Below are positions 28,882 through 29,045 of a DNA stretch of 38,295 bases, piece by piece (the stretch's first letter is position 1; each line of letters begins with the position of its first letter). Below the pieces are notes generated by a model. It was not told the origin of the DNA, ran no database searches, and worked only from the letters and a program-made list of their open reading frames with translations. The translations under genes were made by a program, and so were the position numbers. Location: NCBI GenBank assembly GCA_943704425.1, contig CALSCP010002431.1, forward strand, positions 195,053-233,347, read 5' to 3'. The DNA comes from Ministeria vibrans ATCC 50519 (taxonomy: Eukaryota > Protista > Filasterea).

Positions 28882-28899
28882 GAATGGAACGATACTCGT

Positions 28900-28992
28900 T
28901 ATCCATTGCGCCACGCAAGCTTTAAAAAAGCCTACGCCCGGATTCGAACCGAGAACCTCTTGCTGACTTTTAATCACCGAAGGCAAGCGCGC
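28900..28992 (-). tRNA. tRNA-Arg(TCG): Permuted tRNA-Arg(UCG): 3' part 28992-28929 (intron 28976-28965), 5' part 28920-28900
   Basis: Reordered mature 73-nt sequence GCTTGCG TG GCGC AATGGATA GCGC G CTTGC CT TCG GA GCAAG AGGTT CTCGG TTCGAAT CCGGG CGTAGGC T gives a fully paired cloverleaf with U8, A14, G18G19, A20, the A15-U48 pair and a canonical T-loop. Confidence 0.9.
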
Positions 28993-29045
28993 TGTGGCCG
29001 AGCATCCATTTTTCTCCACGCTTCCCTATACTTCACTAAAAAGTG

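Follow-up and report, generated by a model that had tools for sequence, protein, structure and literature searches.

The window, i.e. the whole 38,295-nt stretch of Ministeria vibrans DNA analysed here, contains on its minus strand the parts of a tRNA-Arg(UCG) in permuted order: the 3′ part lies ahead of the 5′ part on one strand with an 8-nt spacer between them, and the collinear order of a conventional intron-containing gene (nt 1–73) is not found at the locus. The permuted gene sits inside a 560-nt gap between two mRNAs. RNA-type contigs from three runs stop at 28543–28547 to the left of the locus and resume at 29107–29241 to its right, and mRNA-type RNA contigs leave 28564–29096 uncovered; since the contigs stop on either side, the locus is intergenic. 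The mRNA at 29107–29600 (plus strand) is divergent and begins at a distance of ~50–180 nt from the promoter element of the tRNA; in one low-depth contig of this mRNA, a GT..AG joint is seen across which 89 nt are skipped (29224 to 29314). An assembly gap of 10 N (28816–28825), with a G12 run and long stretches of T around it, lies ~65 nt downstream of the gene, and the DNA-run contigs break there. The neighbouring genes identified in the window are as follows:

4582–5721, minus strand: queuine tRNA-ribosyltransferase (TGT)
9586–11391, plus strand: RING + TRAF zinc-finger + BTB + pentapeptide-repeat protein, encoded by a single long ORF
22218–23063, plus strand: gamma-glutamyltranspeptidase
35107–36003, minus strand: CAF1B/HIR1-type WD40 protein

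The elements of the locus, read 5′ to 3′ along the minus strand, are as follows:

29043–29062, minus strand: promoter-like motif AAAATA-N8-TAGCAC, here AAAATACATATATATAGCAC, including TATATATA; an exact match to the motif of this genome
28999–29006, minus strand: leader GATGCTCG, the outer helix (h′) strand of a bulge-helix-bulge, pairing with the trailer at 28898–28891
28998–28995, minus strand: GCCA, the central-helix strand, pairing with D-loop U16, G18 and G19, plus a G.A opposition
28994–28993, minus strand: CA, just before the predicted cut 5′ of G22 (from the sequence and the constrained fold)
28977–28992, minus strand: tRNA nt 22–37, comprising the D-stem 3′ strand, G26, the anticodon-stem 5′ strand and loop CUUCGG with anticodon UCG
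28965–28976, minus strand: 12-nt intron at the canonical 37/38 site (ARAGORN intron report)
28929–28964, minus strand: tRNA nt 38–73, comprising the anticodon-stem 3′ strand, variable loop AGGTT, T arm and acceptor 3′ strand
28921–28928, minus strand: 8-nt intervening spacer TTTTTAAA, between nt 73 and nt 1
28900–28920, minus strand: tRNA nt 1–21, comprising acceptor strand GCTTGCG, U8 G9, D-stem strand GCGC and D loop AATGGATA
28891–28899, minus strand: trailer, consisting of A 28899 (third base of the 3-nt bulge U-A|A) and CGAGTATC at 28898–28891
28864–28881, minus strand: terminator-like T7, G, T10

Each element that the first-pass annotation had listed was recovered at its place on the minus strand, by reading the sequence and by running ARAGORN on the rejoined pieces. 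The T arm reads CTCGG TTCGAAT CCGGG and the acceptor 3′ strand CGTAGGC, followed by the discriminator T, which forms a T6 run together with the spacer. The spacer could also lengthen the acceptor stem by three A-U pairs. The upstream motif ends 50 nt 5′ of the 3′ piece and 36 nt 5′ of the leader helix, and 9 nt separate the trailer helix from T7.

The rejoined tRNA and its junction

When the 5′ and 3′ pieces are rejoined, ARAGORN returns a tRNA-Arg(tcg) with a 12-nt intron, and the intron-less 73-mer is likewise called Arg(tcg) in no-intron mode. The acceptor stem has seven pairs, including U3-G70 and G5-U68, and the 4-bp D stem (GCGC/GCGC) is formed between the two pieces; a 7-bp acceptor stem with two G-U pairs and a 4-bp D stem spanning the pieces are what had been claimed. 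The anticodon stem (CTTGC/GCAAG) and the T stem have 5 bp each, and the anticodon loop is CUUCGGA. All of the conserved bases that had been pointed out (U8, A14, A15-U48, G18G19 and A20) are present in the sequence, as are A21, U33, G37 and the TTCGAAT T loop, giving a rejoined cloverleaf with the eukaryotic consensus bases U8, R15:Y48, G18G19, U33 and U54U55C56. The sequence, as read, would let C32 pair with an intron G that stands three bases ahead of the 3′ splice site, which fits the eukaryotic 37/38 rule. CCA is not encoded.

An ARAGORN call is weak evidence by itself, because the program also called some tRNA in 408 of 3184 arbitrary joins, and in more when introns were allowed; given this permissiveness, we relied instead on a ranking by profile HMM and on a test of register geometry. 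The HMM was trained on 16 conventional tRNAs of the same genome and used to score 2043 alternative joins, of which the proposed join (or a sequence-identical 1-nt slide of it) came top (22.9 bits vs a median of 9.5). As the locus stands in the genome, ARAGORN reported no tRNA genes in the 38-kb window, and Rfam gave no match in the window at gathering thresholds and none at E values up to 10 in a 700-nt cut-out, bearing out the prediction that standard scans would miss it. The permuted gene is single copy in the genome. A contiguous D arm of this tRNA was not found genome-wide at up to one mismatch, and metagenome scans returned no matches either to the permuted layout or to a contiguous D-arm-to-anticodon stretch.

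The leader and trailer form an outer helix of 8 bp with one G-U pair, which appears in the precursor's minimum-free-energy fold along with an acceptor stem closed over the spacer. A fold constrained to the bulge-helix-bulge, with the leader CCA forced to pair with U16, G18 and G19, is 0.6 kcal/mol dearer (−45.2 vs −45.8 kcal/mol). Its geometry comprises the 8-bp outer helix, a 3-nt bulge (U20a-A21|A) and a central helix of four positions, made up of three Watson–Crick pairs and the G.A opposition; at the second cut site (C-A|G22), there is a small internal loop beside the D stem instead of a pure bulge. By a two-nt cutting ruler derived from the canonical 37/38 case, both predicted cuts fall 2 nt 3′ of the central helix and match the junction demanded by the cloverleaf. 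An 8-bp leader–trailer helix at no set position is common (10–13 % of random flanks) and not significant; the exact register, with the 8-bp outer helix and at least three of the four central pairs, arose in 47 of 200,000 random flank pairs (~2 in 10,000). On the modelled fold, the junction motif is thus a bulge-helix-bulge of the relaxed rather than the strict form, and several motifs of permuted genes in Cyanidioschyzon merolae are likewise listed as relaxed (PMC3978253). Together, the rejoined cloverleaf, the HMM ranking, the fold and the register test support the proposal from which we started, namely a permuted tRNA-Arg(UCG) gene with a D-loop junction (A21|G22) and a retained 37/38 intron.

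Transcription signals and other tRNA genes of the genome

The upstream motif was first spotted by comparing the flanks of tRNA genes of this genome. A search of 59 Mb (both strands) gave 22 copies of AAAATA-N8-TAGCAC and one of a reversed control. No fewer than 14 of the 22 stand ahead of tRNA genes: the one at the permuted Arg(UCG) gene, and 13 that sit 24–64 nt upstream of tRNA genes found independently by RF00005, by T-loop pattern or by our own reconstruction. No copy precedes the 5′ piece and none lies in the spacer. Seven unassigned copies (C159:39568, C1405:63854, C2085:47848, C2085:48590, C2350:47766, C2371:117563 and C2497:224882) may mark further disrupted tRNA genes or other Pol III genes.

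The T7 and T10 runs 3′ of the 5′ piece resemble the ends of other tRNA genes of the genome. Among the other nuclear tRNA genes here, the first T run is mostly 7–34 bases long, and the sole case of T6 is backed by T15. A T6 run terminates Pol III in many eukaryotes. Runs of T5–T6 also occur within the predicted precursors of two further permuted genes described below, Arg(UCU) and Arg(CCG), in their introns, and these runs together with the long terminators of the genome suggest that Pol III reads through the T6 of the spacer. The spacers of algal permuted genes, those of C. merolae included, have no terminator signal (PMC3978253), unlike the spacer here. The TFIIIC B-block domain (PF04182), which is short, gave no match genome-wide at E values up to 0.1 in this fragmented assembly; considered alongside the strong upstream element and the scrambled A and B boxes, the lack of a match hints at tRNA transcription independent of TFIIIC, as proposed for C. 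merolae.

Three further permuted arginine tRNA genes were reconstructed elsewhere in the genome:

C491, ~39620–39720, minus strand: permuted Arg(ACG), junction 37/38, 5-nt spacer
C335, ~19990–20130, minus strand: permuted Arg(CCG), junction 37/38, 15-nt spacer, extra 29-nt intron
C1993, ~66399–66570, plus strand: permuted Arg(UCU), junction 37/38, 9-nt spacer, 28-nt T-loop intron, exact promoter motif

All three reconstructions were called by ARAGORN and scored 21.8–26.4 bits with the profile HMM. Two of the three have an extra intron of 28–29 nt in or before the T arm. The sister genes differ from the permuted Arg(UCG) gene in having the permutation junction at 37/38, where the latter carries an ordinary intron and has its junction in the D loop. 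A further candidate, possibly Gly(UCC), lies on C2647 (~46340–46430, plus strand), where a T arm and acceptor 3′ strand come first; after 9 nt of spacer there follows a 5′ part, which has a single acceptor mismatch and ahead of which no terminator but behind which a T15 run stands.

D-loop introns are common among the tRNA genes of ordinary order in this genome. Genes on C1142, C1255 and C1507 have introns in the D loop and elsewhere, and two intron-bearing Leu(AAG) genes stand in tandem on C1275, a TATA-like element lying between the two. The AT-rich C1523 (~56 kb) has more than 25 tRNA genes, including an Arg(UCG) and an Arg(UCU) of its own, and is probably the mitochondrial genome. In the tRNA census of the genome, RF00005 scored only 63 of 508 candidates, too few to establish the absence of a conventional copy.

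A conventional Arg(UCG) gene is present on C2083, within a dense tRNA array that is atypical and possibly foreign. Whether such a gene exists elsewhere had been raised in the first-pass annotation, and one does, in an array of this kind. Odd arrays of tRNA-like genes occur at C2083:5690–9569, C2083:36651–39868 and C585:34535–38063, and on C2093 and C135; conventional genes for Arg(UCG), Arg(GCG) and Arg(ACG) are among their members. Their genes abut, 0–40 nt apart, some with an encoded CCA and some with GATC for GTTC in the T loop. Some share one body and differ in their anticodons, a 'Pro(UGG)' and an 'Ala(UGC)' being set apart by one anticodon base. Oligo-T terminators and the upstream motif are missing from all genes of these arrays. 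An ORF for an rve-type integrase lies beside the second C2083 array, in a stretch of 38 % GC. The arrays may be of nuclear, mobile-element, viral or contaminant origin.

Host and known permuted and split tRNA genes

Judged by its genes, the host is a non-photosynthetic, integrin-bearing, opisthokont-type protist. Its genome encodes three integrin-beta genes with full-length domains, a genome-wide search found no chlorophyll a/b-binding (light-harvesting) protein, and the best named relatives of the TGT in the window are all opisthokonts (animals, Capsaspora, Sphaeroforma, Fonticula and zygomycete fungi), at up to 68 % identity. These three observations exclude the known algal hosts and uphold the earlier suspicion of a non-algal host that would be a new lineage for permuted tRNAs. 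In reviews to August 2026, the records of permuted genes are confined to red and green algae, the green-alga-derived nucleomorph of Bigelowiella and one crenarchaeon, Thermofilum (PMC3978253, PMC13578239, PMC12636532), Auxenochlorella having been added in a 2025 paper (PMC12636532). The literature that we searched held no paper on a permuted tRNA in Ministeria, and none was found among the top-ranked opisthokont literature.

Having a D-loop junction and retaining a 37/38 intron, the permuted Arg(UCG) gene is most like Leu(UAA) of C. merolae, a type I gene in which the 3′ part is also upstream of the 5′ part (Soma et al. 2007; PMC3978253). The C. merolae gene has its junction at 20/21 (here 21/22) and an intervening sequence of 10 nt (here 8 nt), the range for known permuted genes being 1–74 nt (Soma 2007/2014). 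Both genes have the second intron at 37/38, a TATA-like element upstream, a T stretch downstream and no encoded CCA. They differ in that the intron of the C. merolae gene is listed as a strict hBHBh′ whereas the junction motif here is relaxed, and in their hosts, C. merolae being a red alga and the present host a non-photosynthetic opisthokont-type protist. In C. merolae, moreover, expression and a circular intermediate have been demonstrated, whereas for the present gene both are predicted.

The type II genes of Ostreococcus, Micromonas, the Bigelowiella nucleomorph and Auxenochlorella are laid out in the same way and presumably also mature through a circle (Maruyama et al. 2010; PMC3978253; PMC12636532). 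Their junction is at 37/38, as in the sister Arg(ACG), Arg(CCG) and Arg(UCU) genes, whereas that of the permuted Arg(UCG) gene is in the D loop. The tRNA-iMet and tRNA-Tyr genes of Thermofilum pendens share the permuted order and an additional 37/38 intron with the gene described here (Chan et al. 2011, PMC3218864), but belong to an archaeon, have their junction at 59/60, encode CCA and have spacers of 1–7 nt, all unlike the present case (PMC3218864). In the split tRNAs of Nanoarchaeum equitans and Caldivirga, complementary flanks form a bulge-helix-bulge that is cut by the splicing endonuclease, as proposed here (PMC3218864); however, their pieces come from separate loci with separate promoters, while those of the permuted Arg(UCG) gene are 8 nt apart behind one promoter element.

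Proposed maturation, alternative explanations and significance

We consider it very probable that the locus is a working, circularly permuted nuclear tRNA-Arg(UCG) gene. This reading is based on how the gene is built, on the signature of promoter and terminator, on the geometry of the splice motif and on the enzyme and sister genes; its expression, the circle and the mature tRNA we infer from the sequence. Pol III would start ~20–25 nt downstream of the AAAATA-N8-TAGCAC element and stop in T7/T10, yielding a single precursor made up of the leader, nt 22–73 with the 12-nt intron, the 8-nt spacer, nt 1–21 and the trailer. Leader and trailer would pair to form the relaxed bulge-helix-bulge, the tRNA-splicing endonuclease would cut after A21 and before G22, and an RtcB-type ligase would join the cut ends into a circle, in which the RNA would read AAUGGAUA directly into GCGCG at the A21–G22 join. 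The same enzymes would remove the 37/38 intron, RNase P and tRNase Z would excise the spacer at the acceptor stem, and CCA would then be added. The genome encodes two genes with the catalytic domain of tRNA-intron endonuclease, on C1244 and C1078, and one multi-exon gene for RtcB.

It is unlikely, in our estimate, that a conventional Arg(UCG) gene with a D-loop intron was duplicated in tandem or rearranged and left the locus as a silent relic, tRNA-like in sequence and giving no mature tRNA. Such a relic would be in keeping with the lack of coverage by mRNA-type RNA contigs, with T6 in the spacer and with the other Arg(UCG) gene in the assembly. Arg(UCG) is dispensable in some eukaryotes, budding yeast being without it, and this dispensability counts against reading the locus as a working gene. 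The sequence of the leader just upstream of the helix, furthermore, resembles tRNA nt 4–26, with 19 of 24 columns identical, a borderline likeness given that 107 of 2000 shuffles reach its local alignment score of 21; the trailer shows no resemblance to the tRNA of the kind seen in the leader. If real, the likeness would fit a tandem duplication of a D-loop-intron gene followed by the loss of the outer halves. However, tandem duplication of an intron-bearing gene with loss of the outer halves is the published scenario for the origin of permuted genes, and thus applies to functional ones too (PMC3978253). Decay would not be expected to leave the stems and conserved bases intact or to keep the exact promoter motif, the terminator and the cutting register, and every dispersed nuclear-type Arg gene found, four in all (ACG, CCG, UCG and UCU), is permuted; without a working pathway the cell would have no arginine tRNAs of the nuclear type.

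We regard it as a little less likely still that the gene is split and expressed as two transcripts, the 3′ piece ending at T6 and the 5′ piece being transcribed apart, with the two joined in trans as in Nanoarchaeum. The T6 run lies directly after the discriminator, and the complementarity of leader and trailer, of the acceptor strands and of the D-stem strands would serve in trans as well as in cis; yet the pieces are 8 nt apart, the 5′ piece has no upstream motif before it, runs of T5–T6 stand inside the sister precursors as well, and trans-spliced tRNAs are unknown in eukaryotic nuclei (PMC3978253, PMC3218864). That the parts of an ordinary tRNA gene were joined in the wrong order during assembly, a possibility suggested by the 10-N gap and homopolymer runs ~65 nt downstream, where the DNA-run contigs break, is the least credible explanation of all. 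A 2241-nt DNA contig from an independent assembler matches 28892–29600 without difference, spanning the pieces, the spacer and the promoter, although the DNA run behind this contig may itself be source data of the assembly, and the same layout recurs at unrelated loci. Misassembly had been named at the outset as a finding that would overturn the permuted gene; the independently built contig confirms the order of the pieces.

The permuted Arg(UCG) gene is thus a gene of a known kind in a lineage from which that kind is unreported. It brings together a D-loop junction and a canonical intron that is kept, and it offers a case for examining whether Pol III reads through T6. With all dispersed nuclear-type Arg tRNA genes found being permuted, we think it reasonably likely that bulge-helix-bulge cutting, circularisation and end trimming are essential to translation in an opisthokont lineage. 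If this is true, tRNA transcription would be driven by a dedicated upstream element rather than by internal A and B boxes, and that common element could be used to find the remaining hidden tRNA genes; for genomes of this sort, anyone counting tRNAs or studying codon adaptation by means of tRNAscan-SE or ARAGORN would miss essential isoacceptors. The splicing endonuclease of a lineage near animals would, moreover, have to accept sites outside the anticodon loop. Permuted tRNA genes would be no algal peculiarity, their link with algae would be broken, and a permuted set in a heterotrophic opisthokont would raise the question of independent origin vs ancient inheritance.
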